Source: Selaginella moellendorffii (Eukaryota; Plantae; Lycopodiophyta). From it: 64,000 bases of DNA. Shown here piece by piece: positions 1 to 41,325 of the stretch (the first letter of the stretch is position 1; each line of letters begins with the position of its first letter). The position numbers were made by a program, and so were the translations under genes. Below the pieces are notes generated by a model that saw only the letters and a program-made list of their open reading frames with translations, did not search any database and was not told the DNA's origin. The stretch covers positions 2,744,494 through 2,808,493 of the forward strand of contig NW_003314268.1 of NCBI RefSeq assembly GCF_000143415.4, in the 5' to 3' direction.

Positions 1-144
1 CTGGATCAGCAGCACGAAAGAGTTGATCGTTTCCGGATGCAGACTTGTGGCGAGCACCAGGAAGAGCAGACGGTGGCAGCCGCCTTGGTGGCCTCAGGAG
101 CTCGCGAATTAGGGGGTCAGCATCCGCCTTCTGCCTACCGGCAT

Positions 145-620
145 TCAACTGCGATGATATACTTTGGTCGGGGGAATATTAATGAGGTGCTCCTGCTGGC
201 TGCTGCTGCTGCCGCTGTTGCCACTGCCAGGCTGATGGCCATACTCCACGAAGATGTCGTCGTGCACCTTGTTCCTTCTCCTCTTCAAGAGTATCCAGAC
301 TCCAGTGACGATGGCTACCAGCGCGAGCAGGAGCATGACGATGCCTGCCGCGAGCACACCGGGTGATGCCACGAATGCTGCTGCTGCTGAAGATGGTGCT
401 GACGACGCAGTAGGCGGAGAGGTGCCCAAGCCAAGGGGCCTTGTTATGGTCGAAGGTGGTGGCGATAGCGGCCTTGGGTTCCACGTTATACTCGAAGGTG
501 GTGGCGATGGCGGCCCGGCCCTCCTTGGTCGCCAGGCTACAGTCTCGGGCTTGTTGGTCGGCGAAGAAGAAGGTACCAGAGAAGTGGGAGACTCGAAGTA
601 TTTCAGCTCAAACTCGCTTG
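145..620 (-). other. Pro/Ser-rich, single-transmembrane ORF fragment (receptor-like ectodomain/TM piece or pseudogene; may continue beyond the window edge)
   Basis: Open frame ...PPSPPPSSIT...PLSPPPSTIT... (42-bp internal duplication), then hydrophobic GVLAAGIVMLLLALVAIVTGVWILL followed by KRRR. No in-frame ATG was found. Confidence 0.3.
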
Positions 621-699
621 CTTACCACTTCCTTTTTTAGGGCATTAAAGTGTCTAAGTACTTACGATGTGTACGGTAAACGAATGTTTTTGGACAAAT

Positions 700-1280
700 A
701 TGAATAAGATTCGCAAGAACAACGAGCTTCCACTCATCGCCTGTAAGCTCAGTCTACAGATGAGCATTAAGATGCAGCGAGTTCCACCATGCACACGTAC
801 TTTGTAGTTGGCTTTCAACACATCGATCGATGTCCGCGTGATATGGCCCTTCCAGACATCCTCTCACCCATGATCTGAGACAATTCGTCCACAGAAGAAC
901 TCCCTAAACCTTACCTTCATTGCTACCTCGTCCCAGCAACATCAACCATCTTGTGATTGATTTCCAGCGACGGAATTCTGCCAAGATCGACGAACTCCTT
1001 CCCCGGAACGTGGTCATGGGAAGAAAAAACATCAGAATCAGAACAAAGACAGAGCGCATGAACCTTTGCAACGCCCACCCCGACAATGATCGAATCCATT
1101 TTGTTGAAGACGCAGTTGGGCAAATGCACGGGAATACGGCCTCCTCGGCCGCATCCCTTCTCTCGTCCTCCTTTGCGTTCGCCAAGGACGCGATGAACTG
1201 GTCAAACAAGTGATAGATGATGTCCGCCGTGAAGATCTTCACGCTCAGCTCTTCCGACAAGTCTGTGGCCTCATTTGGCG
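700..1280 (-). pseudogene. eIF5B (translation initiation factor 5B) C-terminal fragment, frameshifted
   Basis: Motifs VKIFTADIIYHLFDQF, AEEAVFPC / LPNCVFNK (frameshift between them), EFVDLGRI..EINHK, SIDVLKANYK-intron-ELTGDEWKLVV. No GTPase domain. Confidence 0.8.
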
Positions 1281-1356
1281 CGAGAGTGTGGTTATGAATG
1301 AAAACAATATCAAAGCATTCGTATCTTCTGTTTTTTTTTTTTTTTTTCACAAAAAG

Positions 1357-4300
1357 CTATGTATGATCTGGGATGTTGTGATCCTCCGCTTGCAAAACTC
1401 CCTTGAGGCTGCGCGTAAGCCAGATGGCCGTCTCGCGCGGAGAGACCTTGTCGCTGCCAAACGGCCTCAGCACGATGGCCAGCTCGTCCAGCCGGTGCTG
1501 CGACAGCAGCTGCGCGCACAGCTCCAGCAGCCCCTCCAGCGCCTCCGCCCTCTGCCGGAACGATTTCACGTCGATCCCTTTGCTGCTCGATCGGTTCTCC
1601 TCGCTTGCTTGCTGCTGTGACACTAACACCTCCGGCGTTGGCGGGCATGGATGGCTGCTGCTCACCGTCGTACCCGACGAAGAGACCGAGAGGACGTCCT
1701 TGTCCGAGCTCTGGAGCTCGATCACCGAGCATCCAATGTCAACTTTGCCTGGCAGCTCCAACTCGCTGCTGTCGAGCGGATGATCCGACTGCTGCTGCTG
1801 CTGTTGCTCTCCCGATCCGATCCGAAACGTGCTGTGGCGGATGACGTGAATCACGTCGTTGTAAGCTGGCCGGACCTGGACCGGGGACTTGTCGTAGACC
1901 TGTATGGTGCCTTTCTCCTGGGACCTGTTGTTGCTGCCGCCTTGCTCGCTCTCGCAGTCGTAGGACTTGTACGAGGAAGAGACCGTCTCCTTCTCCGTCG
2001 ACCTGTCCGCCAGCTCTTCCGACTCGCACTCTCGATCCATCATGGCCGCCGCAGGCTTGTCCTGGTCTTCGGAGCATGCACACGGCGTTTCCGGACGGAG
2101 GATCGCTTCTTTCTCCTCTGGCTTGTCCTCGGCGTCCACCCTCTGGAAACTATTCAGCAGCTTGGTCACTGATTTGGTGCTTTCCCGGAGATTGTCTTCT
2201 TCATAGTCACACGTCGACGAGTAGCTTGGCTTTTCTTGTTGCATCACCGCAGGGAGTGCTGGAGATGGAGGCTGAGGCGGGAACCCGTTCATTCTTAGAA
2301 AAGTTGGCGAAGAGTCGATCTTCTTGTAGCTCAGCCATGGAGACTCCATTTTGAAGTGAGACTGCCCAACTGATGGTTCCGGAGCTTGAAACCTGTCAGT
2401 TGCTGCCGAGTCTCTGGCGACTGCTTCGGTAACACCACAGAGAGTTTCCGCTCTGGCGAGAGGGAACTCTGGAATCAAATCCAGCCTTGGTGCGTTCATC
2501 GAAACATCTGGAGACTCCCCACTGACCGAGCCAAGTACCTGATCCGAATCGGACTGAACAGAAGAAAGCTGCTCGTCGACAACAAACTCACCGCGTTTGG
2601 TAGTATTCGCCACCCGAGGATGGAAAGGTGCGAGTTTTGATGGCTCAGTCGAGACTGGAGCATCGCATGCGGCGTCCTCAAAAATTCGATTCTTGTACGT
2701 ATTGCTCACAGGCGTTCCGTTCTGGAAGTTGCTCGCTGCCGGAATTCGACTTCTTAGTGGCGAGGAACTTCTTCTTCCAGCGGACGCCTTCGGCAGAGTA
2801 GACCTTTGAGCTGGACTTCCAAAAGCCGGAGAACGTGTGGCTTTTGCAGCTGGGAGTTTTTCTTCGACAGGTTGTAGAGCGAAGACAGGTGTGGCAACAA
2901 GCTCGGCTTTCACTTTAGCCTGAACAAGTAAGCACCAGTAAGAAACATAATAATAGCAAACAAAGCTTACTATGTGCTTTGGTAGTGGTATTTGAGTTGC
3001 TTTGTACCCGACGTCTGTTTTCATTCTCGATCTTTCAGGAGTCCGGGAAGGCGGAGAAGCTATAGCACGGCTAACATGAGTCACTCTAGCCGGTGAGCTG
3101 CTGATTGGAAACTTCTCATCCCCCTCATCCTTTTCAGTCGAGGTGTTTTCCGTTCCCTTCGAAATAGCACAGTGGTGCCGCTTTCCCATGCGGCTGTCCT
3201 CGGCCCATGCTACGTCTTGTAGATCCGTATCTTCTGTCGGTGACAGTGGCAAGGCATTAGCCGAAAGGTACTGACTGGACGATCTCGACGTTTCTTTTCC
3301 AGAAGCAGCGTCGTTCCATATTGGACTGGAGCAATCTACCATGTTATCTTGAGCACCACCCCAGCGACAATCACTAGAGTCGAAAGTTCTGCAAGGACTG
3401 CTCTTTCCACTGTTATAGCTGTCCTTGCCACTGCTCGAGTTGCTTATTCGACTGGCATCTCCGTTTTGAGGTCGGTGTTTTGACTGCCTATCCGGTGTAG
3501 AAGATTTGAGAAGGCTAACTTGAGTTTGGCATAGTGTAACATGTGCCTGCAGATGTGGATGACGAAGCAGATCTCCTGCCTATTGATTTATAAATCCATT
3601 AGAACAAATATAAGACATGCCTACAACCTACCGTTGGGCGATGTTCTGGATTTTTCCTCAGCATGCTCCTGATTATGGACTTTCTGCAGGCAAGTAACAG
3701 TAAGTAATAAGAGGCCGCTACGCTTTATAAAGACTTACAAGGTATTGGAATAGTTGTTGGGTAGAGGTCCTACAGTAGACTTGTTGATTTTACTGATCAA
3801 TCCTTGCATATCCTGCAAGATAAATTGGTAAATCATTGGGAAAGCTTCGGTACATAACTTACGAAGGCTTTGAAAGCAGGTCGGTGAGCAGCCATCTCAT
3901 ACATACAACATCCTAGCATTTCAAAAGATCAAGAAAATCAATGCGACAAGCTTGGAACCATCATCAGCATACCTAACGACCATATATCTGATTTGAAGCC
4001 ATATGGGATGTCGGCAAGAAGTTCCGGGCACATATAATTTGGGGTCCCAACCACCTGCAATGTTTTCTTCCTGTCAAATTCGCTGCCAAAACAGAATAGA
4101 ACTTACAGATGAAGCTAGATCATCTGCTTTAAGCAATTTGGCAAGGCCAAAATCTCCTGCTCATATAAAAAATATGCGTCAGCAAGTAGCAAGCAAAATG
4201 AACTGAAACTGGCATACCAAGTCGAATGTCTTGATCTTTTGTCAAAAATATGTTCGAGCACTGAAAAGTAGAAGAGCTTGAAACCAAATTCTGTCAGCGT

Positions 4301-5035
4301 TCAAAACGGTGCCTACCTTCAAGTCACGATGTAGTACGTGATTCGAATGAAGGTATTCCACAGCTAGAAGAAGCTGCGTAAACCACCTGCACAGCTTCTG
4401 CAAAATTTCAAAAGCGGTGATTGCTTCTTGTTGCTATGGATAGAGCTATAAAAACCTCTTCAGGAAAGAACGTTCCGTTGGATCTTCTGATCATCTCGGC
4501 CCTGGCAAGAAGTCAAACTCATTTTAGTGCTCTGTAGAGACGTAAAGGAGCACCCTCTTACGGTTCAAATGACTTACATATCACCCCCTTCACAATATCC
4601 AGTAACGATGCAAACATAGCATCCCTGTTACATCCAGTTATAGTCCATAAGCTGAACAGATCAAAGAGCAACACTCACCTTTTCGACCCAGGATTCCTTG
4701 TGGTCGACAATGTACGGATGAGTTATCCCAGCGATAAGTGCCATCTTCGAAATTTACACAAATTCTGTCTCGTGAAAGGAATCCAGAAAGGAAAAGGCTT
4801 TACCTCTTGATGAGCAGATCTCCTGCACCTATCAGTCTGTCGCGCAAGCCTGATTTTCTTCAACACATATCTGCAAGAGAACACACTTCATCAGCCAAGA
4901 AGAAAAATCTTAGCCAATTCTCAGCACTCACTTCTTCTTCTCGATTTTGTGATTGACGAGTATCGCAGAACCAAATGCCCCTCTCCCAACCTGCTCCATA
5001 ATCTCGTACTGATCCATCCTGGACTCCATTGCCAT
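1357..5035 (-). CDS. NEK: NIMA-related Ser/Thr kinase (plant NEK6-like), multi-exon
   Basis: Exon 1 (M)[26 protein letters not shown]; kinase motifs HRDLKCSNIFL, GDFGLAK and GTPNYMCPE in short exons; plant NEK C-terminal motif [12 protein letters not shown]...[10 protein letters not shown]. Start is 5035 or 5029. Confidence 0.95.
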
Positions 5036-5411
5036 TGAATCCGCCTTTTCCTGTTACCCTGTGTGGTCTGCTCCTCAAGAAACTAAATGCACGCCATAAC
5101 GCTCCCTCTTTAAAGAACTCCCCTTCCCTTGATCCAAAGAAACTTGAGCCACCTACATTACAAGCCCGCTATCTCATCTTGGTAGATCTGCATTGCCCGG
5201 ACGAAGATCCGGAGAGGACTCTCTTCACTGAGCACCGTAACCTGTCCGCCATAGCCTGTTCCACAGGGAGCATAATCGCGCCGAGGGAGTGGCGACTATA
5301 GCTTTGTCCCTATAACCTTTCCATCCGGCATTGAGTTAAAGCGCAGTTCCTGTGGGCCTCTGATCAGAAGAGCTGCGGCTTGCCGACACACCGTCGCGTT
5401 AGCGAGCTGGT

Positions 5412-5498
5412 CTATTCCACGGCAAAGAAGGAATGAGGGTGGAATCTGGCACTGACAGGGCAAGGACAAGGCACGCAGCTGCTCTGGCGATCCACCAT
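5412..5498 (-). promoter_or_regulatory. Upstream ORF (28 aa, MVDRQSSCVPCPCPVSARFHPHSFFAVE) in the NEK 5' leader
   Basis: ATG at 5498 and TAG at 5414-5412. It lies just downstream of a probable 5'UTR intron (GTAAG at 5625 to CAG at 5536). Confidence 0.6.
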
Positions 5499-6227
5499 AA
5501 TCTCCGCTTATCCGCTAAGAAATCTCGCCCGGAACCTGGAGATCAATCAAAGGAATAAGAAATCGCTCGAAATCCCCGAGAAAGAAGAGAGAGCGAAATC
5601 TCCGACAGGTAAAATCCGAGCTTACCGGCGCTAGAGATTTCGCGGCCGGGAACACGAGCACGAGCGCCTTGTGATCTCCATCGATCTTGATGGATCGTCG
5701 CTACCGCTGCTGCGATTGCTGGAGACGCGATTCAAGGCGCCACGCTGCTCTCTTAAATGCCGCTGCTCCATTCAAAGCCCTAAACGAGGAAGTATAAACA
5801 CTACTACAGAGAGAAAGGGTCGGTTGTGTGTGAGGCTTTCATACTTTCATAGAGGAAAGGAATGGAAGAGCATGCAGTCTTTACGAACACCAGCCTATAA
5901 CTTCCCATCTTATCCCACAGCCCAGACAAGTAAATCCAGGGAACGTATAGGCTGGTGCGTCATTGTCTCTTGTTAATTACCGGCCAGCTGTTTTTCACAA
6001 CACACCTTTTACCTTTTTGAGTGATTTTTTTTCACTGCGAAGTAAAAATCACAATCAGCATTGCTGTGTTGATCTAGCATTGCATCATTGATGTCGTACT
6101 TTAACCAAACTTTACGCAGCACATGGTTAGAACATTGATGTTCCAGCAATAACAAAAAAATCGAATATATAACCTTGGGAACTATTCTAACTTGTACAAC
6201 GAACCCGGGGACCACATTTTTCTATCT

Positions 6228-7940
6228 CTATGTATGGTTTAGGGCATTTGCAAAGAGTGTGTAGGCAGTCACATCTTCTCCACCAAGCTGTGCGGCCGCC
6301 AAGGATCCAATGGCAAGATCATTGTGGGCAATGCAATTCGATAGAAGGCATCTCCATTCCAGGGAATCAGGTGCAAATGCCATGGTCGTCAAGAGTTCTC
6401 TTGCGTCGTCAAGATACCCAGCCCTGGCAAGGATGCCTAACAAGCAAGAGTAGTGCTGCTTTGTGGGTTCCAGGCTATGATCAAATTTCATGGAAAGGAA
6501 GAATCTCTTGCTGGTGTTGACGCCACTGCTGCTGGAAGAGATTAAGATTGGGGAGAATGAAGCATTGTCATGATCTACGATGAGATTGGTCTCGTAGAAA
6601 AGCTCCAGTGCCATGGTAAACTGCCCGTTTTGCGAGTAGGCATTTAGCATCGCGCTACACGAAACCAGGCTACGCTCCGGCATTTTGTCGAATATAGATC
6701 TAGCGAGATCGAGATGCCCTTCCTGGGCATATGCGACCAGCATTGCGGTCCAGCTGGCAAGGTCCCTGAGTGGGATTCCATGGAATACTCGTAATGACTC
6801 TCCCACATGCCCAGATGTGGCATATGCTACAAGCATGGCCGTGCAGGAGAAGGAATCTTGGACGGGGAGTGTGGAATCTTGAAGATGACGTGCTGCCTCG
6901 AGCGCTCCAGTACGGGCCAAAGTTGCAACCATTGCATTGCACGAGACAAGATCGACAAATGGAAGTTGATGAAAAATATTCCTTGCGTCTCGCAAATGTT
7001 TGGAACTATTCGCTAGAGCGGCCAGCATTGTGGTGGAAGACTGGAGGCTATGAACCGGCATGTTTTGGTACACGGATTTAGACTCCTCAAGATGCCCTTT
7101 CACGGCATATGCCCAGAGCATTGTATTCCAGGACACCGTGTTGCGCTCTGGCATCGTATTAAAGATTCTTTTTGCTTCGAGAAGGTTTCCTGCTCGAGCA
7201 TAAGCCGCAAGAATCGTGTTCCAGGAGATTAAGTCATGCCCGGGACAAGAATCAAACAGTTTCCTAGCAGTATACAGTTGACCACTTTCGGCATATGCAA
7301 AAATGATAGCGTTCCAGCAAGCTTGATCTCTATATTCCATCTGATCAAACACTGTAGCTACGAATTCCAGAGAAAAAGAGTGATCTGTAAACTCTCTAAT
7401 AATTATTGTGCAAGATATAATACTAATTTCTGGGATCTCTTCAAAGAGCTCCCTACATTTTGTAAGATGCCCACCTTTGGCATTTGCAAAGAGAATTGTG
7501 TTCCATGCATATAAATCTCGCATTGGCATCAAATCAAACAGAGCCCCTGCCTGGCTAATGCCACCATTTCGTGCAAACGCTCCCAGCAGTGCGGTCCAGA
7601 CAATAAGATTCCTTCCCGGAAACCGATCAAACAAGAGCTCGGCTTCTCGCAAATGCCCACGCTCACTCAATGCGGTGATCATCGCGGAACACGAACAGGG
7701 CGTGAGGATCGGCATCGCTGCCAAGAGCTCCCGCGCCAACTGGAGTCGATCGCTGCGAAGCGCCGCCACGAGCATCAGATCCCAGCTGAAGGAATCCCTT
7801 CGCGATCCCAACTTGCGAAAGATCTCGAGCGCGGGATGGACGCTTCCACTCCTGCCGTGCTTCTCGATCATCTTATTCGCGGCAAACACATCAATTCGAG
7901 AGGAGAGGAAGAGGAAAGAAACTCTCTCGATTCCATTCAT
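6228..7940 (-). CDS. PLS-class pentatricopeptide repeat protein with truncated E domain, no DYW; intronless
   Basis: Repeated motifs of the type D/N-x-VSWNxILxAYAxxG-x-LxxAxxIFDxMP, then HYSCLLGILARAGYLDDARELLTTM.F.PD...WRCLL. Start codon uncertain (7940 or about 7871). Confidence 0.88.
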   Translation of the reverse strand: MNGIERVSFLFLSSRIDVFAANKMIEKHGRSGSVHPALEIFRKLGSRRDSFSWDLMLVAALRSDRLQLARELLAAMPILTPCSCSAMITALSERGHLREAELLFDRFPGRNLIVWTALLGAFARNGGISQAGALFDLMPMRDLYAWNTILFANAKGGHLTKCRELFEEIPEISIISCTIIIREFTDHSFSLEFVATVFDQMEYRDQACWNAIIFAYAESGQLYTARKLFDSCPGHDLISWNTILAAYARAGNLLEAKRIFNTMPERNTVSWNTMLWAYAVKGHLEESKSVYQNMPVHSLQSSTTMLAALANSSKHLRDARNIFHQLPFVDLVSCNAMVATLARTGALEAARHLQDSTLPVQDSFSCTAMLVAYATSGHVGESLRVFHGIPLRDLASWTAMLVAYAQEGHLDLARSIFDKMPERSLVSCSAMLNAYSQNGQFTMALELFYETNLIVDHDNASFSPILISSSSSGVNTSKRFFLSMKFDHSLEPTKQHYSCLLGILARAGYLDDARELLTTMAFAPDSLEWRCLLSNCIAHNDLAIGSLAAAQLGGEDVTAYTLFANALNHT

Positions 7941-7952
7941 CAATTTCAATTT

Positions 7953-9317
7953 TCAGCCTCGAGCGATCGACCCATGGGCTGCTTCCTCCAAAACCCGCTG
8001 GATCGCAACATCAAACGCATCACCCTCCAGCCGATCAGACCCTCCCCCGTGCGCGTAGATCAATCTGGGCGCCATCTCCAGCAAGCGCGCTCTCATTGCG
8101 GCCACCTCCTCGCGCGGGAACCTCCCAAGAACCTCGGAGATGCTCACGTTCCCGCCCTTGATCTCCTCCTCACGGACGAACACAGAGTAGCCACGCGGAT
8201 CGTCCGGAAGGTGCCACGTGTACTGCGAATATGCCGAGTCCTCGTGGAAGAACACCGGGATACACCCGGCGACGATGGCATCAAACACGGATCGTCGAGT
8301 GGCGCTATCGCCGCGCGGCTGGAGGCAAAATTCCGCGCTGAGGAACGCCGCGGCGATGGGCGCCGGATCGTGTCCGCAGCGTCGCTCACCACAGTCGACG
8401 AATTTGCACCGCGCGCTCGCCTCGCCCACGCACTGATCCAGCAGTAAGCTCCGGATGCTCGCTTCCTGCGATGGCCGGGGAGCCCCCGCAAACGCGAACA
8501 AGTAGCTCCTCCGCGAGCCCCGGACTCTCGCGACCCAATCGCCCAGCTCGCCGCGAGAGCCCGGATGGAACGCAGTCGGGTATGGTACCGCGTGTTGCCG
8601 GCGACGAGGATCCCACGGATTCTTCTCCACGAACAGCACGCTCATGCTCGAGAACTTTGGAGACGCGAGGATCGGCGTCCCCCAGCGATCAAGGTCCGGG
8701 TTTGATCCAGCTCCAAAGTCCCAGGCTGTTCTTCCCATCACCACGAAGTGGTCTCGACCGCCGCCGCCCTGTTCTTCATCCCAAAACTTCCTCGCGGCGT
8801 TCCTCTCGAGCCACTCCGCCACCCCGGCTCCATGCAAGCTCTTGTTGGCGCCGGGGTTGTAGAGGTAGTGCAAGGCGTCCAGCCCGGCGTAGTATGGGAC
8901 GTAGAACGCGTTTGCTCGAGCTGGATCGTCTGTGAGGCACTCGTAGCTCGCCATTCTCCGGTGGAAGATCACCTCGAGCATGTATGAGTCGGTCTTGTAC
9001 CACCCTTTTCCCAGCAGCGGCTCGAACTCCTGTGGCACTGGCTGTCCAAATCCGTCGTTGGAGACGTGATCGCAGAAGTTGAGCCAGTTGACAATGCCCG
9101 AGTTGCATCGCTCGAGCAGCTGCGAGTTGAATTCACTGGGGAGATCGTAGACGAAGACCCTCTTGCCTTTGCAGCCGTCTACGCTGCTGTTCTTTCCCAG
9201 TGAAAGTTCCTGAGAGGTTTGCTCCCGAGTTCCTGGACTCGAGTTGCGAAAGAACAGCAGCGCCATACCGGATACCAGAAAGCAATACAGACTTGCTGTT
9301 GCTACTGATTTCTTCAT
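7953..9317 (-). CDS. GT47 exostosin-family glycosyltransferase (xyloglucan galactosyltransferase MUR3/XLT2-like), intronless
   Basis: N-terminal TM, C.GKRVFVYDLP.EFN, WYKTD.YMLEVIFHRRM, GGRDHFVVMGRTAWDF, FCLQPRGDSATRRSVFDAIVAGCIPVFF. Confidence 0.93.
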   Translation of the reverse strand: MKKSVATASLYCFLVSGMALLFFRNSSPGTREQTSQELSLGKNSSVDGCKGKRVFVYDLPSEFNSQLLERCNSGIVNWLNFCDHVSNDGFGQPVPQEFEPLLGKGWYKTDSYMLEVIFHRRMASYECLTDDPARANAFYVPYYAGLDALHYLYNPGANKSLHGAGVAEWLERNAARKFWDEEQGGGGRDHFVVMGRTAWDFGAGSNPDLDRWGTPILASPKFSSMSVLFVEKNPWDPRRRQHAVPYPTAFHPGSRGELGDWVARVRGSRRSYLFAFAGAPRPSQEASIRSLLLDQCVGEASARCKFVDCGERRCGHDPAPIAAAFLSAEFCLQPRGDSATRRSVFDAIVAGCIPVFFHEDSAYSQYTWHLPDDPRGYSVFVREEEIKGGNVSISEVLGRFPREEVAAMRARLLEMAPRLIYAHGGGSDRLEGDAFDVAIQRVLEEAAHGSIARG

Positions 9318-9562
9318 GGATATCTATGCAAGAGGAGATCTGCGTTGGTATTTTCTTCAAGTGACAAAAGAGAAAGTTTGTTGTTACCTTTATTCGGTGG
9401 CTCGGGAATCGTTCGTGCTTGAAGAAAACGTTAGCAAGCAGCTTCGAAGGCAAGAAGAAAACTTTCCATAAAGCGAACCTTGAGATCGAGAGAAGTATCG
9501 AAATGCATGGGGCCTTCGAATATAAGAGGAAAAGAAAACGAAAAAAGAAAATGACTTGCCGA

Positions 9563-10897
9563 TTAGATGCTTGCCAGCTTCTGAATCACTCTAGACTTTT
9601 CCGCGTCGATGATCCCGCATATGGCGTTCACTGATCTCTCTAGTTGCCCGTCCGAGTTAACCACCGCGTAATCAAACTCTTCCAGTCTCTTGAGCTCGTC
9701 TCTTGCGGTTGCTACTCTCACCACCAGTTTCTCCATGCTCTCCGTCTTTCTTTCTATCAGTCTCTTCACCAGAGCAAACTCCGACTCTGCGACGATGTAG
9801 ATGAAAACGGCGTTGGAGCCGAGTATCGAGCGAACTGTGGCAGCTCCTTGGACGTCAACTCTCAAAACGACGTCCTTCCCTTCGGCCAAGCAATCTCGCA
9901 CCTACATGAAATTAGAAAAACCGAAGGAGAGATAGATAGACCAGCTTACTTGTTTCTTAGGAATCCCTTTATAATCTCCGTAGACCAGCGCATGCTCCAA
10001 GAGCTCTTTCTTGTCAATCATCTCCTCAAACTCTTCCTTGCTGACGAAGTAGTAGTCGACACCATGAACTTCTCCGGGACGCTTTTGCCTGCTAGTGGCG
10101 GTCACCACGAAATGTATCTCCTTCCTCACTTCTTGAAGCCTCTACACAAGACACAACCATGGAGAAATCAGCCCGAGAAACCAGACAATCCACAAACCTT
10201 GATGACAGAGTCTTTGCCAACACCGCTTGGGCCACTGATGACAATTACCAGAGGCTTTGGTGCGGGAACTTGAGGCCCGACATCGAAAGGCGTCCCCAGT
10301 GCCTCCTCGAGCTGCGTCATCATTTTCACCTGGAACATGAAGAGCCAACCAGTAAGAACATGAAAGAGAACTAGGAAAAGAACCTTAAGAAACTTACGAG
10401 CATAGATATAGATTCATAAGAAGAACAAGGAAATCAAGAACATAGACAAAGGAGAACAAGGAAAGAAGCTTACAACACACACAGGGATTGAAGAAGAAAC
10501 TTACGAGCGTAGATATTCATAGGAAGAACAAGGAAAAGAAGCTTACAACGCGAAGATGAAACTTACGAGCATAGATAGCAAAGAAAAGAAAGAGCTCCAA
10601 TACCTCGTTGAGGCCACTGGCGATGTCCGAGGGCGACGCTCCGGTCGAGTCTTTGTCTTTACATCCTGAAGCAAAGCTTGACAAGAGTGAGGACCAGGAA
10701 GGAGGAGGCCGATGATGCTTTGGACGCCTACTACCACTCCCACTACACAGCTCACTCACTCTCCCAAGTTTTAGCGAGCAGAACAAGCGGCTGGCAGTCA
10801 TTCTCTGCGGCGGAAAACGATGGAAATCTCTCACACAGCGGTGGGATTTGACGAGAACAAGCCTCGCGGCTCGAGGAGGGAGCCTAAATGCGCTCAT
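9563..10897 (-). CDS. Organellar guanylate kinase, multi-exon
   Basis: Transit-peptide-like N-terminus; [14 protein letters not shown]-loop; [21 protein letters not shown]; [16 protein letters not shown]; VLRVDVQGA. Confidence 0.93.
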
Positions 10898-11190
10898 CGA
10901 TTCCTTCCTTGCTTGTTACAATCCCTGGAAATGCAATGCACGCTACAGCTACATTGCGAGTGTGCCGGATTTTCTAACCAGACATGGATCGCGATGACGC
11001 CCTGCCCGCGATCGGAGAGAGCGACGCTTTTTCTTTGCTTCTTCCACGCTGGGGCAAAATTAGGGCAAGCGGGCAAATACCAAAGCCCTAAACAATCGCG
11101 GTATAAAGGCCGGGCGGCCACCAAATTTGGACCTCGCTTTTAGGGTTCTTCCGGAAACTTTGGAGGGCTTTTGGCGGGGGAGGGGGAGAG

Positions 11191-12111
11191 ATGGGACGCT
11201 GCAAGATTGAGATCAAGTACCTCACCGTCAAGAGCAATCGCAACGCAACCTTTCGCAAGCGCTCTTGCGGCCTGATGAAGAAGGCGGACGAGATCCACAT
11301 CCTTTGCGGTGCCGAGCTCATGCTGGAGATGGAGCCAGAAGGAGGGACGCCTCGCATCTACGCCTCCGAGAAGCGCAACGATTACGTCTCCAATCCCAGG
11401 TACCACATCAACTCCAAATCCAAGCCCAAGGATTCCTCCTCCCCAAAGAAAGGCTCGACTCTTCTCCAAAGCTCCAAAGCCAAAGCTCTCAAGCCCGCGT
11501 CCAGGGCGGTTCCAAAGCTCGAGCGAGGCATCAAAGTTCCATCAAAGGCTCCAAAGCTCAAACTCAAGGCTCCAAAGCTCGAATTCAAGCTTCCAGGAGG
11601 CTTGGAGCTTCCACAGACAGGCTTCAAACTCCCGAAGATCGAAGCTCTCGACGCACCACCGGCCTTGGCAGCGATCCCCCTCTCGGTTTCACTCCCGCCA
11701 AACGAGGACCAGCTCATCGGCTACCAGGGCTTCGACCACCATCAGCTCTTGCAAAACAGCGTCAACTTTGGACTACCTCCCACGAACTTGGACGATCATG
11801 GCTCCTCCTCCACCGCCGCCGCCGCCGCCGCCAACACACCCTTCTTCAGCGAAGAACACGACTTTGCAGCCATGGATCCGACCTCCAACAACAACAGCGA
11901 GCTCGACAACTTCCCGGACGATCTCTTCGACTTTTCGTCCCTGAAGAACTTCGATCCTGCAAGCGAGGAGCCGTCGGCACAGGATCAGACGACGAACTAT
12001 CCTTTACCTCCTCCAGCAGTGCCGCAAAACATGTTTGTCATCGGGGACCAGCTCTACTGCTTGCAGCAAGCCGCGGACGGACGAATGGTCTATACCGCTG
12101 TTACCTGCTAA
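11191..12111 (+). CDS. Type I-like MADS-box transcription factor, intronless
   Basis: MGRCKIEIKYLTVKSNRNATFRKRSCGLMKKADEIHILCG is a MADS domain. No K domain; low-complexity KAPKL repeats and an acidic C-terminus. Confidence 0.85.
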   Translation: MGRCKIEIKYLTVKSNRNATFRKRSCGLMKKADEIHILCGAELMLEMEPEGGTPRIYASEKRNDYVSNPRYHINSKSKPKDSSSPKKGSTLLQSSKAKALKPASRAVPKLERGIKVPSKAPKLKLKAPKLEFKLPGGLELPQTGFKLPKIEALDAPPALAAIPLSVSLPPNEDQLIGYQGFDHHQLLQNSVNFGLPPTNLDDHGSSSTAAAAAANTPFFSEEHDFAAMDPTSNNNSELDNFPDDLFDFSSLKNFDPASEEPSAQDQTTNYPLPPPAVPQNMFVIGDQLYCLQQAADGRMVYTAVTC

Positions 12112-12275
12112 CTTTAAGCTTACTTAGGACTTCGCGTCAACTTTAGATTTAGAACGCAACGCGGCTTTCGATATTTATACATTGTGTACACGTTGGGTCT
12201 TTCTTCCAATTATATCAAAAACAAAGAGAGAGTTTTAACCAAATAAGGAAAAAAGAAAGAATAATAGACAGGAGC

Positions 12276-15200
12276 TTATCTCTGTCGTTTGGATGAAGAA
12301 CCAGAAGCTCTGGCTTTTGGATCGTCTTTTTCTTTGTCCCTGTCGTTTGGTTTGAGCCGGCGCTGGAGCTCTTGAGCATGGCGGTGCCACCACGTTTCTC
12401 GAGCTCGCCGGGGCATCCTGTTGTAGCGATGGTCCGAGTTGAGCATGTCTTTGGCGTCGCTCCACACGCCCAGGATGTCTTTGCCGTCTTCCGCCAGCTT
12501 CGAGGCCGCGTCTAGCGTTATAGCCTCTGCCAGGAGTGCTCGGTATTCCTTCTCACACCGCTGTGTAGAACAACCGTCAATGGGCTGAAACAGTATGAGA
12601 AAAGCGTTTACCTCGTACAGGTCCTTGACGTGATCTCTGAATAATCTCTCCCGGTCCGCAGCATCTAGCTCTGGGTTTGTAGCGCGTCCAAGAGCGTCTT
12701 TTTCTAGCTTTGGCTTGCTCTCTGTCCACGATGCCTGGCAAAAACAATCAAAGTATAAGATGCATGGCATTTTCAAGAGCATACCTCGGCATCTTTGATT
12801 TTCTCCGTGAGAAGAGCCTGATAACCAGTCACTGCATCTTTCCGGCGAGCCTTGGCTCTAACTCTGTCGAGTTCCTGCTCGGTTCTTTCCTTTCGCTTTC
12901 GCATCACTCGTTCTCTTTCCCGCAGTTTGTTCTGACAGTTGAAACTTGTAAGACTTAGGACGAAAACTTGCGAGCTGTGCATGCTAACCTCTTCATCACG
13001 TTTTTCTTTCGCAGCTCTCTCGACTACCTGTTCAGCAGCCCTTAGTTCTGCTATGTAGCTGTTGAAGATGTTCTCTCTATCCTCGTGTCTTACAGCTTTG
13101 CATCGCGGATCATGTCTCACGAGATCTTTGATCTGCACCGACAAGTTGAGCGAATGTACACCTTTTTATACAAGATTAATACCTTCGACCAGCGAGTAGT
13201 AGAAGTTATGTCGTTTCTCTCTTTCAGCATAGCCTGGAACTCAGAGGATACAGATGCATAGGCCGCTTTAGCACGTTCTTCCTCCGCTTTCTTCAGCGGT
13301 AAGATCCTGCAGAAACATCTAGTTAGAAATGTAATCATTGAAAAGGTGGATGGTGCAGAAGCTTCGGCCAAACACTCGATTTCCATTACAGAAACAAAGT
13401 ATACCTGCTGTCACCGATCGCAAGTGGAACACATTTCACCTACATAAGGAAAAACCCATGGCTTTCTCTGGCTGATCAAGACTTAAGACTGTGCAAATTA
13501 GCATCTGCACCATCCACACAACAAAAGCTTTACTGATGCAGTACTCAGTTTACCTTTCATTGAGTAGCGTCTCCCTTTCTTTGCGATCCAAAGCTTCAAA
13601 ACGGGGATCCTGATTCCAAATGCTAGCAAAGTTCTCATATGTGGTGCTAGCAGAAAACTCCTGCAACCCCTGGGTATTAGAAAAAAAGAATAACGAAGAA
13701 AGCAAAAGGAGTCTTACATTGGATGAGTTTGCCTCGTCCAGGAGTTGTTTGAAACCTTCAACAGCCAACTTTTGTGCAGCCCTCTTTTCCTTTCTCTCTT
13801 CCTCTGCCCTTGTCCGAACATAATGCTCAAATATTGAACGCCTTTCAGTGTGGCCAGCAATAGCCTACAGAACCAAAATAAACAGAAAGCAGACCGAGGT
13901 CCAAGCGTACCTTGAAGCGAGGATCAAAGAGAATCTTAGGCAGTTCTTTCTCCCATTTCGAAAATGGTGCGACCCCTTTCTCTTTCAACATTTCCTACAG
14001 AACACAACAGGAAACAATTAGCTACAAGGAATACAAAAAAGCAAGAAAAAAAAAACAAAAACAGAAAAGAGCAAAGAGTACTACATTAATGCACCTTAAA
14101 CTGCCGGACGCGTTCTTCCTTTGTTACAGTTGGACCATCCTCTTCACTATCTGATGATGAATCTGATGTAGATGCTTCAGCGTTTTCTTTTGACTTGTCC
14201 TTCGACGTATCATCTGCCCCGGCTTTCGCAACCTCTGGTTCTGAGACTGTCGCAATTCCGCCAGAGTATTCCTGCAGTTTCTTCTTTATTGTATCAAGAG
14301 CTGTCGGCGTATTTGATGTGCCTTTAGCTTCCCTCCCACCAGTCAAAGCCGCAGGAGCATTAGACACGTCCTTCTTCCCTTTGTCGACAATCTCTGCAGG
14401 GATTTGCCAGCTCGTTGCCTTACAGGAAAAGAAAAAGATGTCATGACTTTGCAAAAGCTGCAAAGAAAATTGCCCAGTACCTGCGTTTTAGGATTGTAGT
14501 AATACTTTTTCCCGTCATTTGTAGTCACCAGAGACCAATCCGTGCCACTCAGCTTCTCACTGTGAAAAATAATAAAAATTTCCCATAAGAATTGCGGTCC
14601 AAATGCAACTCATGATGAACTTACCAGGACACTGGAGTTGGCTGGGACGTGACGTTGCCAGCCTGAACGTAAAAGCAAACATAGTACACACAACTAAGAA
14701 GAAAACAAGTTACCTCTCCTTTGAAGCCCGCGGGTTTCTCATACGTAGAATCCCCTGTAACAGAATTATAGTAGTAAATGACTCCATCTTCTGTTTTATG
14801 CGCAGCCCAAGCATCTTCCTCAGACACTTCAAATGGAAAAGCATTCTCCGATTTAGAATCACTCACAGCAGTGTGACTTTTGTCTTCGCCAGTAGCAGCA
14901 GCAGCAGCCGGCATTTTGTGAGCATGGAAGTCTGGAAGTTCATGGTGTGCTGCTGATCCAGAAATATCAATGCCACTGCCACCCCACACTCCAAACGCAG
15001 CACCACCTTGGAAAGGATCGCCCACTGGCCGGAACGATGGATGGAGCTCTTGCCTCTGGTATGGAAGAGAAAAAGTCGGTGGATAGAGAAACGGCCTTTG
15101 GGGATGTTGTCCCGGAAGAATCCACTGGTGGTTCGATGGATATGGCGGCGGCTGGACCAAAGGAGAGCTCGCTGGCTGCGACGTTGGCCGTGCTCCAAAT

Positions 15201-15552
15201 ATCGATGGCGGAGGAGCGCTAGCGTCCCATCTTACATGCGCGTAGCCCGTGCCATTCGTGGGGCTGGAGCCCATTTGCCCAGATGGCGATGGAGGCTGAT
15301 AGAGAGGAAGGTTTGGCGAGGAGGCGCCCTGCGAGAGAGATTGCGCGAGAGCGCGCGCCTTTCCAGTGAGAATTTCTAGACTGTGAGGCTTACCGGAGGA
15401 GTAGAATTGAGCTGGTTTGGCGCTCGATACGGCTGGAGCGGTGGCGCTGGGTAGCCTGGAAACACGGCGCGCTGCATTTGGCCTGCTTGCCAGTGCCCCT
15501 GCGACGGCGATCCTTGCCCTGGGAGCTGTTGCCACGCCGCCGGCGACGCCAT
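12276..15552 (-). CDS. PRP40C: Pre-mRNA processing protein 40C (WW + FF domains), multi-exon
   Basis: Start MASPAAW at 15552; two WW domains (DAWAAHKTEDGVIYYYNSVTGDSTYEKP; DWSLVTTNDGKKYYYNPKTQATSWQIP); FF domains ([47 protein letters not shown]). Confidence 0.92.
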
Positions 15553-24196: not shown

Positions 24197-25249
24197 CAGT
24201 GGAGAGAAAAGGAACGTACAGAGAGTATCTGAGGAGGCGTCCTCACCAAGGAGAGTTCCAAAGGCGCTTCTTCAGATGGGAAGGTTGAAGATCCTTTATA
24301 GCAGCAAGGGTCAGGCATTTCGATGCGCTGTGGAAGAAATTTTGCGCTGGTAAGCTTTGGCTATCGTTGAGCAGGTGCCGTAAATCGGAAGCACAGGGTG
24401 GAAAGAACGTCGTCTTTTTTGCCAAGTCGATGGACGACAGATTCATCGTGAAGCAAGTGACGAGGACGGAGCTTCTCTCTTTCCTGGAGTTTGCACCGGA
24501 GTACTTCTTCAATTCTCTAGACTCTGGCAGCCCGACCTGTCTGGCTAAGATTCTCGGGATGTATGAGGTAAAGGTTTGGTCATTCACTAGGAAAGCTCAT
24601 TTCTGGTTTCATTGTTGCTTTCGACGCTAGGTGATCATAAATGGATTTGTTGGTCATGAAAAATCTGCTCTATGGCAGACACGCTACTCGGCTATATGAT
24701 TTGATTCATCCAACACATGTGAGTCTGTTTAGGCAAGTGAATATGTTGCTCTTGTATTCACTACCCTGGAGCAGGGTGCAACATACTTGCCGCAAATAGC
24801 CTTCGTGAATGCCACAGTGGTCCTGCTGAGGGGTTATGTTTCTCAGCTCAAGCCCGGCTCTGGACTAACATGACCTCCAGCTCCAGACCTTCTGAAAGCA
24901 ATGACCTTGAGCTGAGAGACATAACCCCCCAGCAGGACCATTATGTTATCCGTAAATGCTATTTGTGCCAAGTATGTTGCACCTTGCTCCAGGGCAGCCA
25001 ATACAAGAGCAACATATTTCACTTGCCTAAACATGTGGGTCCGGAGCCGGAGGAGAGTGAAAGCAGCAGCCACAACAATTGTGAGCTCTGGGCAGGAATG
25101 CTTTGGAGGCTGAGCCAAGCTCCAAGCTATCTATTTATCCCTTCCATCGATCCATCAATCTACTGATCGACCGGCTTCCTGGGCTGGTATGTATTTTCTA
25201 AAGTTCTTGAAGTTGATGCTCGTTTTCTCTAGAGATTGCGCAAAGTTTG
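24197..25249 (+). pseudogene. Tandem partial duplicate of the FAB1 3' end (kinase fragment plus 3'UTR), with many deletions and an inserted foldback element
   Basis: 24421-24507 is almost identical to 22514-22600. It keeps the intron ending gacgctag and continues into a copy of the stop/3'UTR (ctttggaggctgagc ... ttctaaagttcttgaagttgatgctc). Confidence 0.92.
24726..25033. mobile_element. 308-bp foldback/MITE-like element with about 127-bp terminal inverted repeats
   Basis: Arms 24726-24852 and 24906-25033 (TGTTTAGGCAAGTGAA... / ...TTCACTTGCCTAAACA), 53-nt spacer, flanked by tgtgagtc / tgtgggtc (8-bp putative TSD, 1 mismatch). Confidence 0.75.
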
Positions 25250-36920: not shown

Positions 36921-38848
36921 AATCACTGTAAACTGAGCAAGATTAAAAGCCTCTCGCCGATTTACTGATAAGAGGCAACTTGTTGATTAGTTCCGAGTGT
37001 TCACCTATAGAACAATGGTTTATTTAAAGCTGCGACCTTATCAGGGCTCTTTACAGTTTGTGTAGTTGAACTATCATGGTTTCCTCAGGTGATAACAAAA
37101 ATTATATCACTATTTTTTACGAAATTACATGCATACAATTGCTTAGATTTGTGTTTCAAAAGTAGACTAACCCATGAAAAAGCTAGCAAGAACTTAGAAT
37201 GCCTTTTTGTCTTTTTCTTGAGTCATGAATCTTTATAAGTGTATTTTATTTCTTGTGCCGCACTAGCTAGCAATAACATGATGATTTTAAAACAAGCTAG
37301 GTATAGTTGGACAGCTGTGCTAGACTTTACAAACTAATTATGCTGGATCATACTTGCAGATCAAAATAGATTTACACATGTGTATAAAAGTTAATATGTA
37401 AATTGACAAAGTCAGTTACCCCATTTTATCCAAGTTGAAAGTTGAACCCAAATTTAAGAAAATTTTATGCTAAAAAAAAAATCCTGAAGAAACAAAAATG
37501 CCAAAAAAATTATACTTTTATAATATAAATAGAATTTGTTACTATCATCATAAGTATACTTAAGAAAACTAAATTTTATACCCTTATAAATATTTTAAAG
37601 GATTAAGAGTATTTTTAAAGAGTGTATACCCTAAAAAAATTTGTTTTTTCATCCATGGATTAATTTAATTTTTATTTTATTATACATTACATTACATATA
37701 ATGAAAGTCATGGCAATAAATGGATTAAAATTTTTATAACTTCTATAATAATAATCTGGAAAAATAATAATAAAAATCAATTATGGGACTATTATCATAC
37801 ATAAAATAATATTTAATTCTTTTTGGAAGTTACTCTAAACGCTTTTTATATTATGTAATATTTTCCTACAAAACAAGTGTGGAGTGGTGATAATATGAGT
37901 ATATACAATCTTCAATCAATTGATTATTTAGCATATAATACTTCTGTACAAAAATATTTGGTTATATTTTAAAAAAGATAAAGTGAAGAATAAAAATTAA
38001 AGTTTTTGTCCAATACAAAAAATTATTTTAAATTTTGAACTTTTTGGGTGTGGCTTAAGAAATGGCCCAACACTATGTTACGTGAGCTCATTCTGGTCAG
38101 ATTTACCCAGTGGAATTTGTTACCTGGGCAAAAATAGTCTAATAATTTTTATTATATATAGTTAAAAATATTAAATATAAAAATTAAATATTTGGAGTCT
38201 TACTTTTTTCTTAAAGAGTTTAGTACCAAAGAATTATCACTGTGATTTTTCTTATGGATGTTTGATTGTTAAACTAATATACATAAATATAATTTGATAA
38301 ATTTAAATTTTACAAAACTACAATACTTTTAACAATTTTTTTGAGTCCAACAGAAAAAAATGTAAAAAGAAATTTTACATTTTCAATAGAAAATAAACTT
38401 GAAAAATATAAATAATTCACAATGCTCAATTCATCTTTCAAATCAAACACTTTACAAAATTGAATTAAATCATGCAATAAACTCAAATTAACAAAAAAAA
38501 GGCAAATAAATGACTGGTTTAAAGATTTGTTTATCTAAACTCAACTATTGTGGTTATGCTAAAAATCTTGTTCTGCTTGTGGTCAATGTGCTTCTATTAG
38601 TTAGTTTAGAAAAAAAAATGAAAAAAATAACAAAATAAAAGAGGTGATCTTCCTGGAATACAAATCAAGGTTATCTTCAAGGCTGAACCACATCAATGAT
38701 ATCATCAATTCCAGCTTCACACCTTTTACCCGATTCACAGATGGAATATTCAGCAACAAATTCTTACCATCCCTGTTTCCGCTTCTAATCCATTCCAGGT
38801 TTTGAAACTTTTCTTTCGAAACGAAAAGAAAAAGCTAGCAAGATAGAT

Positions 38849-38911
38849 GACCATTTCTTGTGCAGAGGCCATGCTAATCTTCTCTGTATCGTCTGGTGTC
38901 ACCAAAGAGAC
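38849..38911 (-). pseudogene. U6 snRNA pseudogene with two internal deletions
   Basis: Minus strand reads GTCTCTTTGGTGACACCAG-ACGATACAGAGAAGATTAGCATGGCCTCTGCACAAG-AAATGGTC, which contains the U6 ACAGAGA box and AGC triad region. Confidence 0.85.
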
Positions 38912-41244: not shown

Positions 41245-41325
41245 GTTGACATGGCCGAGTTGGTCTAAGGCGCCAGATTAAGGTTCTGGTCCGCAAGGGC
41301 GTGGGTTCGAATCCCACTGTCAACA
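41245..41325 (+). tRNA. tRNA-Leu (anticodon AAG)
   Basis: GTTGACA/TGTCAAC acceptor stem, CCAGA-TTAAGGT-TCTGG anticodon arm, variable arm, GTTCGAATC T-loop, upstream CAA, downstream T-run. Confidence 0.96.

Follow-up and report, generated by a model that had tools for sequence, protein, structure and literature searches.

PRP40 proteins help to bring an intron's two ends close to each other, and the C-type is specific to plants. In mammals the poison exons of splicing factors are often flanked by detained introns. The study of PRP40C in PMC6700278 makes no mention of isoforms. In Arabidopsis AtGRP7 a donor located within the gene's own intron gives rise to a second transcript, in which part of the intron is kept together with a premature stop, and Arabidopsis PRP40C (At3g19840) has an alternative 5' splice-site event with products of 171 and 207 nt, the large product being at 39% (both in PMC3526319).

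Intronic pairing has been described in yeast as zipper stems, for which the limits given are a total linker of 42-85 nt, one side having 10 nt or more and the other 20 nt or more (PMC12350175). The zipper stem of RPL7B, an autoregulated gene, competes with an alternative structure. Alternative splice sites in Drosophila and human genes can lie between complementary stretches of intron, the pairing of which is believed to favour the outer sites (PMC2724269, PMC8052449).

We discuss here intron 8 of PRP40C in Selaginella moellendorffii. Positions are those of the window, which is the whole 64-kb stretch of DNA that was analysed, and the features are listed in Table 1.

PRP40C and the transcripts of its eighth intron

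The gene had been named PRP40C in the initial annotation, and this is borne out by the translation of the gene model, which is identical to XP_024526718.1 ('pre-mRNA-processing protein 40C [Selaginella moellendorffii]'). Pfam finds WW in two stretches (E 9.5e-15), WW_TCERG1 (E 1e-11) and FF in four stretches (E 4.5e-45), which is the WW pair followed by an FF array that marks the plant C-type PRP40 / TCERG1-like proteins. The top matches in protein searches are PRP40C of liverworts, ferns, conifers and angiosperms, with 60-69% identity over the FF half, and the protein is an orthologue of the land-plant proteins of that name. The same searches gave no orthologues from other Selaginella, Isoetes, mosses or hornworts, and a look-up of the locus in Cryptomeria and Elaeis gave no record.

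Table 1. Features of PRP40C and its intron 8 (window positions)
Feature	Position	Strand	Remarks
PRP40C gene, ATG to stop	12276..15552	-	13 exons, 791 aa, two WW domains and FF-domain array
Exon 8	13554..13660	-	107 nt, phase-2 end (..AAT GAA AG); junctions with exons 7 and 9 in RNA contigs
Exon 9	13183..13306	-	124 nt; gene model and RNA contigs
Intron 8	13553..13307	-	247 nt, GTAAAC..TGCAG; sole PRP40C intron >100 nt
149-nt exon 8 extension	13405..13553	-	kept in alternative transcript; in-frame TAA 13552-13550 (AGG TAA)
Duplex arm A, GUGGAUGGUGCAGAUGCU	13500..13517	-	starts 36 nt downstream of canonical 5' splice site
Local 8-bp hairpin GUGCAGAU/AUUUGCAC	13491..13510	-	-8.7 kcal/mol; nascent-transcript fold, in silico
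Candidate 35-nt cassette (tag|GTGAAATG...CAGCAG|gt)	13405..13439	-	3' end used in RNA; 5' end unseen
Internal 5' splice site GT (cag|GTatac)	13403..13404	-	joins canonical acceptor; leaves 98-nt intron 13404..13307
Duplex arm B, AGCUUCUGCACCAUCCAC	13346..13363	-	ends 22 nt upstream of putative branch A
Putative branch-point motif CUAAC	13322..13326	-	branch A 13323; 16 nt upstream of 3' splice site

The introns of the gene are, in order, 65, 51, 65, 62, 100, 46, 57, 247, 50, 57, 50 and 51 nt, and intron 8 is indeed the outlier in length that it had been taken for, at 247 nt against 46-100 nt in the others. Within it ttttccttatgtAG, with the acceptor AG at 13441-13440, stands directly before the 35-nt unit 13439..13405, and GTatac directly after it. 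If included after the phase-2 end of exon 8 (GAA AG) the unit would read AG|G TGA. The initial annotation had proposed this unit as a poison cassette exon, and the unit itself, its borders, the phase and the AG|G TGA reading are all present in the sequence as it described them. The putative branch A, placed by its match to the consensus, would be common to both of the donors discussed below. Coding potential in intron 8 is limited on either strand to short chance ORFs.

The RNA data are the assembled contigs of three runs guessed to be RNA (X4, X8 and X6, from three studies), which were picked for containing the intron 8 stretch; each contig carries one depth figure and rare forms are dropped. 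All three have the junction 13405|13306, with 98 nt skipped between 13305/6 and 13404/5 and ends CT..AC, and the donor of the proposed 35-nt exon is therefore real. The canonical 247-nt skip is in two of the three (X4 and X8), so that the 247-nt and 98-nt skips share one acceptor at 13307, as is expected of an alternative 5' splice site. The junction 13554|13439, the other side of the proposed cassette, is absent from the contigs of all three runs, in which rare forms can be missed. The contigs instead read through the would-be acceptor: they are unbroken over 13404-13582 (X4, X8) and 13404-13659 (X6), and in X4 and X8 the alternative-form contig has no branching across 13439/13440. As they are continuous from exon 8 to 13405, exon 8 is extended by 149 nt. 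In X6 the alternative form alone was assembled, as a 1807-nt contig with the neighbouring introns removed and the 149-nt segment kept. In the expressed event either an alternative 5' splice site is used or an upstream sub-intron A (13553-13440) is retained. Of the poison cassette as first put forward the donor side thus stands and the acceptor side is missing from the RNA contigs, and the immediate stop that was predicted among the FF domains is present, but as a TAA (AG|GTAA) and not as the TGA of the cassette.

In contig depth the two forms stand at 46 and 61 in X8 and at 17 and 32 in X4, which makes the alternative and productive forms roughly equal in abundance on this measure. Among the RNA-like runs listed the 31-mer share is 0.59-0.65 in 15 runs and 0.88 in X4, with seven studies represented if X4 is included. 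The expected share is 0.66-0.73 for the extended form, 0.36-0.39 for the canonical form alone and 0.41 for the canonical form plus cassette, and the shares in the listed runs fit the extended form and neither of the others.

In the extended form the reading frame ends after residue 518, in the second FF region. The TAA is 145 nt before the 13405|13306 junction, with four further junctions after that, and is thus a premature stop in the position associated with AS-NMD (more than 50 nt upstream of an exon-exon junction).

The predicted intronic duplex and conservation of the intron

The inverted repeat 13517-13500 / 13363-13346, which was reported in the initial annotation as bracketing the cassette unit, is there as described, with 17/18 positions complementary and a 14-bp perfect core. 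It spans 172 bp with its arms included, and the loop is 136 nt. No perfect stem in 300 shuffled versions of intron 8 exceeded 11 bp, whereas the observed one has 14. The predicted duplex energy is -30.9 kcal/mol and, with intron 8 folded alone, the arms have a pairing probability of ~1. Predicted occupancy in a 478-nt context is 0.22 at 10 C, 0.60 at 20 C and 0.93 at 37 C. A role as a simple thermometer is doubtful, because the duplex alone would be far too stable to melt in the range of growth temperatures and its predicted occupancy in context rises with temperature. The local hairpin would occupy the 3' half of arm A, and its formation would therefore exclude the long duplex.

A repeat of this kind is not in itself rare in the genome, as the 64-kb window has another four or five inverted repeats of comparable quality that do not consist of simple repeats. 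The inverted repeat 3922/4224 was considered as a second 'zippered intron' and rejected, one of its arms being within a kinase exon.

The two Selaginella haplotypes are identical over the 247 nt of intron 8, where ~5-7 differences would be expected, and the other PRP40C introns have ~18 events in 654 nt (P ~0.001, or 0.007 without the variable intron 5). This is evidence that the sequence of the intron is under constraint. The sequence of the duplex arms is the same in both haplotypes.

The position and phase of intron 8 are kept in liverworts, a fern and angiosperms. In the liverworts the orthologous intron includes a block of ~290 nt, 84% identical between Marchantia and Calypogeia, and in this block there is a unit of the form AG|GTGA..CAG|GTATAG that would give an AG|G TGA stop, as would the 35-nt unit of Selaginella. 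In Marchantia its borders are AAG|GTGATGAAC and CTACAG|GTATAG. The unit and ~240 nt around it are far better conserved than the remaining intron. When the liverwort block is compared with the 64-kb window in a gap-tolerant search the best match is intron 8, and the reverse search points back, the top match in Calypogeia being beside the block and outside it. Plain local alignment of intron 8 gave z of 2.7-3.6 against Marchantia and was not significant against Riccia, and an nhmmer profile of the liverwort block had no match in the window. The resemblance is thus weak, and homology of the liverwort unit to the 35-nt unit is a suggestion only. A related element was not found in the orthologous introns of the fern (287 nt), Amborella (100 nt) or Nymphaea (96 nt).

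Covariation in orthologous introns had been proposed as a check on the duplex, and here the outcome is against it. The share of cells that pair in an alignment of five species is 59.5%, with 51-55% in controls slid by -3, -1 and +3 columns and 29-32% for other slides, and judged in this way the liverworts do not keep the duplex pairing. For four liverworts RNAalifold predicts two hairpins, a local one in arm A and one over the cassette donor, and a weak 5-bp outer helix; the changes among the liverworts are mostly one-sided, and are compensatory in two pairs, neither of them inside those helices.

Legume contigs from metagenomes have a conserved 50-nt cassette-like block. It was not found in grape, tomato or an L018-type plant, and we therefore make no pan-plant claim.

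It is rather unlikely, in our view, that the 35-nt unit is the Selaginella version of an ancient PRP40C unproductive-splicing module, to which an 18-bp duplex with a competing hairpin has been added and sets the balance. An origin of the module before the split of liverworts and vascular plants is part of this joint reading and is put forward just as tentatively. The features that can be cited for it are the same phase-2 intron, the G TGA after the exon AG, a TGTYCCAC-TTGCGAT core and the ACAG|GTATA end.

Proposed donor competition and other readings of the locus

The best explanation overall, for which we consider the chances evenly balanced, is that intron 8 is a constrained regulatory intron in which two donors compete and the duplex steers the choice. 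Two 5' splice sites would compete for a single branch point and a single 3' splice site. Use of the canonical donor 13554|13553 would remove 247 nt and give the full 791-aa WW-WW-FF protein, and use of the internal donor 13405|13404 would remove the last 98 nt and keep 149 nt, giving the stop AGG TAA. The transcript from the internal donor is expected to be unproductive, as the stop is immediate with five exon junctions downstream. It might be degraded by NMD, be detained in the nucleus or, at most, serve to make a truncated protein. The 98-nt option is probably a natural size for the spliceosome, since the introns of the genome are mostly 46-100 nt.

The duplex would link a point 36 nt past the canonical donor to one 22 nt before branch A, bringing the effective length of the intron to normal, and would close both internal splice sites into the 136-nt loop. 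With this zipper-stem spacing, and with the internal sites looped out, it should favour productive splicing. The folded state would then lead to productive splicing and the unfolded state to the unproductive form, and unfolding could be due to the local hairpin on arm A, to a helicase or to protein binding. Which way the duplex acts, what becomes of the transcript and whether PRP40C feeds back on it are matters of our inference, as is the branch point.

A duplex that formed as firmly as predicted and did block the internal donor would be expected to leave little of the alternative form, which is however abundant.

An unlikely alternative is that there is no regulation, with the repeat a neutral relic of template switching or of an old insertion, and the internal GT a cryptic donor that gives splicing noise because a 98-nt intron suits the Selaginella spliceosome better than one of 247 nt. 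The other inverted repeats of similar quality in the window, the lack of duplex conservation in liverworts, the borderline similarity to the liverwort sequence and the insert-free homologous introns of 96-100 nt in Nymphaea and Amborella all fit this. However, a neutral intron should have accumulated some of the ~5-7 expected haplotype differences, and noise does not readily account for an alternative form that roughly equals the productive one in abundance and turns up in seven studies, nor for two-way searches that point to a conserved block in liverworts.

We think it about as doubtful that the 35-nt unit is a strict cassette, included as an exon in an mRNA that NMD removes too fast for it to be assembled, in which case the abundant form would be a half-spliced detained precursor with sub-intron B removed and sub-intron A (13553-13440) still present. 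The acceptor ttttccttatgtAG is good on paper, the X6 contig is otherwise spliced and retains just this segment, the liverworts conserve a unit with AG| and |GT borders and the same G TGA start, and the detained introns of mammals that often adjoin splicing-factor poison exons would be a precedent. Against it, 13554|13439 is seen in none of the three runs and the X4 and X8 contigs are unbranched at the acceptor, and the immediate TAA of the retained segment makes the TGA of the cassette unnecessary.

Removal in two nested steps, in which the 98 nt are excised first and the new CAG|G then serves as 3' splice site for the canonical donor, is very improbable, as is the status of on-pathway intermediate that it would give to the extended form. 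The AG|GT at 13405/13404 does recall a recursive-splicing site, and an AG ending is found once more at the new junction ..GACAGCAG|GATC, but few pyrimidines precede that AG and an intron of 247 nt has no need of subdivision.

That the 172-bp inverted repeat in this over-long intron is a MITE with terminal inverted repeats, or that the intron hosts a snoRNA or miRNA, is extremely unlikely: no second copy was found in the window (pattern search with up to 2 mismatches, and blastn of intron 8), the 203-Mb DNA run X1 at >=85% likeness gave no extra contigs but a single contig with flat depth over intron 8, the arm flanks ..ttgttgt / cttttca.. form no target-site duplication, and with no Rfam family matched by intron 8 even at E up to 10 and a 136-nt loop unlike that of a Dicer substrate, snoRNA, miRNA and riboswitch were rejected also. 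The dispersed MITE copies that the initial annotation had named as one of the findings that would overturn its proposal are thus absent from both the window and X1.

An abundant stop-containing isoform made by donor competition in a constrained intron is a testable handle on the control of PRP40C dosage. The locus also offers, in a plant with short introns, a compact test of whether a stem that shortens an over-long intron can tip the choice from one splice site to another. Should the connection with the liverwort block prove true, the module would rank with the oldest elements of unproductive splicing that land plants are known to have in genes other than SR genes.

Comparison with described systems

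The kind of event is already known, and Selaginella PRP40C adds to it a new case with partial support. With the poison cassettes of SR and other splicing-factor genes it shares a short AG|..|GT unit that would bring a stop into a splicing-factor gene, and the liverwort PRP40C orthologues conserve such a unit at the sequence level; the difference is that in the Selaginella RNA contigs just the donor side of the unit is used. AtGRP7 and AtGRP8, which are subject to AS-NMD, are alike in being splicing-related genes with an intronic donor, partial intron retention and a premature stop. The At3g19840 event can be likened to that of intron 8 by event type. Neither the AtGRP7/AtGRP8 cases nor At3g19840 come with a described long-range duplex.

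With regard to looping-out in Drosophila and human genes, the likeness is in the complementary intronic boxes around alternative splice sites. Those cases rest on conservation or covariation together with mutagenesis, whereas the Selaginella pairing is seen in one species only.

In the case of the yeast zipper stems (RPS17B, RPL7B; Rangan et al. 2025, PMC12350175; PMC12311795) the intron 8 linkers, 36 nt and 22 nt long, add up to 58 nt and are within the published limits, and so agree with the positional definition, given the putative branch A, and the stem is predicted to form on thermodynamic grounds. Like the stem of RPL7B, the intron 8 duplex has a rival, the predicted local hairpin on arm A. 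Unlike yeast, Selaginella is a plant with intron-definition splicing, and its stem also encloses a competing donor, so that it would pick the outcome of splicing and not just speed it.

PRP40C and its eighth intron

With regard to the gene itself, the name PRP40C given in the initial annotation stands, as the 791-aa translation of the 13-exon model is identical to P0001 (XP_024526718.1), the NCBI "pre-mRNA-processing protein 40C" of Selaginella moellendorffii, and Pfam finds in it two WW, one TCERG1-type WW and four FF stretches. Introns 1 to 12 are 65, 51, 65, 62, 100, 46, 57, 247, 50, 57, 50 and 51 nt long, and intron 8, already remarked on for its length, is thus a clear outlier at 247 nt against 46-100 nt in the other eleven. 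Exon 8 ends in phase 2 (GAA AG), so that inclusion after it of the 35-nt candidate cassette unit would read AG|G TGA. Only chance ORFs were found over intron 8, and the reading as a known RNA was dropped, as an Rfam scan of the intron gave no match even at E=10.

PRP40C lies tail-to-tail with an SRF-type MADS-box gene, ~150 nt from the PRP40C stop codon, and a guanylate kinase gene lies beyond; the second haplotype has the three genes in the same order. The window also carries a U6 snRNA gene and a tRNA gene.

Features of the window and of the liverwort PRP40C loci
Feature	Position	Strand	Remarks
PRP40C gene	ATG 15552 to stop 12278-12276	-	13-exon model, 791 aa
Intron 8	13553..13307	-	gene model
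35-nt candidate cassette unit	13439..13405	-	ttttccttatgtAG before, GTatac after
Inverted repeat, arm A / arm B	13517-13500 / 13363-13346
Predicted arm A hairpin	13510-13491		8 bp, -8.7 kcal/mol
CUAAC motif	13326-13322		putative branch point
Liverwort ~290-nt block	L002:4636-4926, L003:4960-5252, L007:4592-4890, L006:4962-5253
Guanylate kinase gene	9560-10340	-
SRF-type MADS-box gene	~11190-12100	+
Near-perfect hairpin	24726-25033	+	~308 nt, MFE -197 kcal/mol, z -18.5
U6 snRNA gene	38820-38911	-	44.2 bits, barely above gathering score 44
tRNA gene	41245-41325	+

Transcripts and constraint

The intron was compared with assembled contigs of one DNA run (X1) and, for transcripts, of three runs from three studies (X4, X8 and X6) that were only guessed to be RNA, but behave as such in that introns 6, 7, 9 and 10 are cleanly spliced out. 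Canonical removal of intron 8, a 247-nt skip, is present in contigs of X4 and X8, and a 98-nt skip with GT..AG ends, joining 13405 to 13306, is present in all three. The latter is the downstream junction of the poison cassette proposed initially; the contigs of X4, X8 and X6 lack the upstream one, 13554|13439. The donor side of the cassette is thus real and in abundant use, but its acceptor was not seen. In the contigs with the 98-nt skip the sequence continues into exon 8 with no break at either the would-be acceptor or the canonical donor (13404-13582 in X4 and X8, 13404-13659 in X6, where the contig is 1807 nt long with all neighbouring introns removed), and the alternative transcript therefore consists of exon 8 plus 149 nt. 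This extension can equally be read as an alternative 5' splice site or as an upstream sub-intron that is retained. A strict cassette model, in which the extended form is a detained-intron precursor, is a main rival, and nested splicing is another.

As AG|GTAA reads AGG TAA the extended form stops immediately, 145 nt ahead of the next junction, and its product would end at residue 518, inside the FF array. The immediate stop foreseen among the FF domains is real, but the codon is TAA and not the TGA of the cassette. In rough figures, contig depth for the alternative and productive joints is 46 against 61 in X8 and 17 against 32 in X4, and in X6 the alternative form alone was assembled. The fraction of sampled 31-mers present is 0.59-0.65 in fifteen listed RNA-like runs and 0.88 in X4 (16 runs, seven studies), against computed values of 0.36-0.39 for canonical mRNA alone, 0.41 for canonical plus cassette and 0.66-0.73 for the extended form. 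The retained 149-nt segment is thus widespread, an estimate of breadth limited by the runs having been ranked by their content of the very stretch under study. The unproductive isoform and its internal donor are real and abundant; the transcript would presumably meet an unproductive fate, and PRP40C itself may feed back on it. The X1 contig is without one G of the GGG run at 13573-13575 in exon 8, which would shift the frame; this was not seen in the second haplotype or the RNA contigs and probably stems from an error in the reads or the assembly.

Across the gene, the second haplotype of the assembly (P0164, locus L001) shows 97.3% identity. The exons (2376 nt) differ at 11 columns and the eleven remaining introns (654 nt) by ~18 events, and intron 8 (247 nt) has no difference at all; had it diverged as fast as those introns, 6.8 events would be expected (P=0.001), or 4.9 if the variable intron 5 is excluded (P=0.007). 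Intron 8 thus matches coding sequence in its conservation, and it is with this constraint and the abundance of the isoform that the third main rival, a neutral relic with splicing noise, has to be reconciled. As the arms of the repeat do not vary, the comparison says nothing on their pairing. Intron 5, unlike intron 8 with none, has a cluster of differences at 14034-14056, with an 8-nt indel and several substitutions within ~25 nt. Haplotype differences at 13565, 13140 and 13089 are also seen in runs: RNA contigs of X4, X8 and X6 all carry the other haplotype's letter at 13089, and X4 has both alleles at 13565, so that both PRP40C alleles appear to be expressed.

The inverted repeat and a possible gate

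The inverted repeat reported in intron 8 was confirmed, with 17/18 positions complementary and a 14-bp perfect core, against a longest perfect stem of 11 bp in 300 shuffles of the intron. Leaving simple repeats aside, the window has four or five comparable inverted repeats at other places, and the repeat is therefore real and non-random yet not one of a kind in the genome. The initial annotation had allowed for the repeat being the TIR of a dispersed MITE, and a MITE or transposon is excluded: the window has no second copy of the 14-mer (<=2 mismatches), blastn of the whole intron against the 64 kb finds nothing beyond the intron itself, X1, from the same organism with 203 Mb of contigs, has one contig over the intron at flat depth (>=85% likeness), and no target-site duplication was found beside the arms. 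Elsewhere in the window is a near-perfect hairpin, with 113-nt arms at 85% and 16-nt perfect termini, which may represent an inverted duplication or else a locus of hairpin-RNA or young MIRNA-like type.

When intron 8 is folded alone the arms are predicted to pair with a probability of ~1 and a duplex energy of -30.9 kcal/mol, the folding z-score of the whole intron being only -1.87. The 3' half of arm A is also predicted to form a hairpin with the adjoining downstream sequence, leaving GUGGAUGG free to nucleate with arm B and so giving two mutually exclusive predicted folds. The internal donor is also inside a predicted local hairpin (-11.4 kcal/mol). With 478 nt of sequence folded together, the duplex core is predicted to be occupied more at higher temperature, from 0.22 at 10 C through 0.60 at 20 C and 0.88 at 30 C to 0.93 at 37 C; a duplex only partly formed at growth temperature, as predicted, would be in keeping with a mixed splicing output.

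We suggest that two donors would vie for a single branch point and a single acceptor. Neither donor fits the consensus perfectly, with matches, counted by eye, at 7/9 positions for the canonical GTAAAC and 6/9 for the internal GTATAC. To a spliceosome handling introns of 46-100 nt, the intron offered by the internal donor would be of normal size (98 nt) and that of the canonical donor over-long (247 nt). The duplex starts 36 nt after the canonical donor, and 22 nt separate its end from the A of CUAAC, the sole good branch motif ahead of the acceptor and the putative branch point; given this spacing, pairing of the arms would normalise the effective length of the long intron and close off the two internal splice sites within a loop of 136 nt. 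We infer the direction of this effect on splicing, and offer structural gating by the duplex as a reasoned hypothesis. The observation made initially is thus confirmed and its interpretation partly supported.

Homologous introns and known systems

The position and phase of intron 8 (LLNE-R|V/ILPL, AG|G) are identical in every orthologue examined, the homologous intron being 1087 nt in Marchantia paleacea, 1019 nt in Riccia fluitans, 1009 nt in R. sorocarpa, 1027 nt in Calypogeia fissa, 287 nt in Adiantum, 100 nt in Amborella, 96 nt in Nymphaea, 2743 nt in grape and 1295 nt in tomato. The four liverwort introns are unalignable apart from one ~290-nt block, in which Marchantia and Calypogeia agree at 84% (E 1e-85) and Marchantia paleacea and Riccia fluitans share stretches at 100%. 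Within the block is a 51-nt unit, CCAAG|GTGATGAACCCTGTCCCACTTTGCGATTCGCCGAGGCATATTTGGCTACAG|GTATAG, a candidate for a deeply conserved poison exon. Like the Selaginella unit it starts G TGA after the AG of the exon and would stop the frame. The two units share, in the same order, a GTGA start, a TGT[CT]CCAC-TT(T)GCGAT core and an ACAG|GTATA end, and ~65-75 nt upstream of both is TTTTGTGGATGG, the core of arm A.

Strict local alignment between Selaginella and liverworts does not reach significance, a softer scoring does so at z 2.7-3.6 with Marchantia alone, and an nhmmer profile of the block has no match in the window. A gap-tolerant scan of both strands of the 64-kb window with the 206-nt Marchantia block places intron 8 first in 2/3 scorings, and when intron 8 is in turn scanned against the Marchantia locus the block ranks first; with Calypogeia the top match adjoins the block and is not within it. 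Whether the Selaginella unit is homologous to the liverwort block is, on these comparisons, about evenly balanced. The long duplex is not kept in liverworts, with 59.5% of cells pairing in a five-species alignment against 51-55% in controls slid by -3, -1 or +3 columns, and local pairing is predicted instead for the arm-A-like sequence.

A metagenome scan with exon 8/9 peptides returned mainly legume contigs (L023-L033), in which the last ~280 nt of the homologous intron form a block conserved at 85-93%, with a 50-nt cassette-like unit, TTTTTCCTAG|ACAGAGAAATGA..CAGCAG|GTAGTA, and an in-frame TGA. As grape, tomato and another rosid (an L018-type plant) do not have this block, we keep it as a separate observation.

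Unproductive splicing through intronic donors is established for plant splicing regulators, AtGRP7 being the textbook case (PMC3526319). In the same study an RT-PCR panel includes Arabidopsis PRP40C (At3g19840), for which an alternative 5' splice-site event gives 171-nt and 207-nt products whose ratio shifts under AtGRP7 overexpression; the likeness to Selaginella is in gene and type of event. The sole functional study of PRP40C found (PMC6700278) does not mention isoforms. Yeast, flies and mammals provide known cases of stems that bridge intron ends or loop splice sites out (PMC12350175, PMC2724269, PMC8052449), and we found no example in plant PRP40C in the literature.
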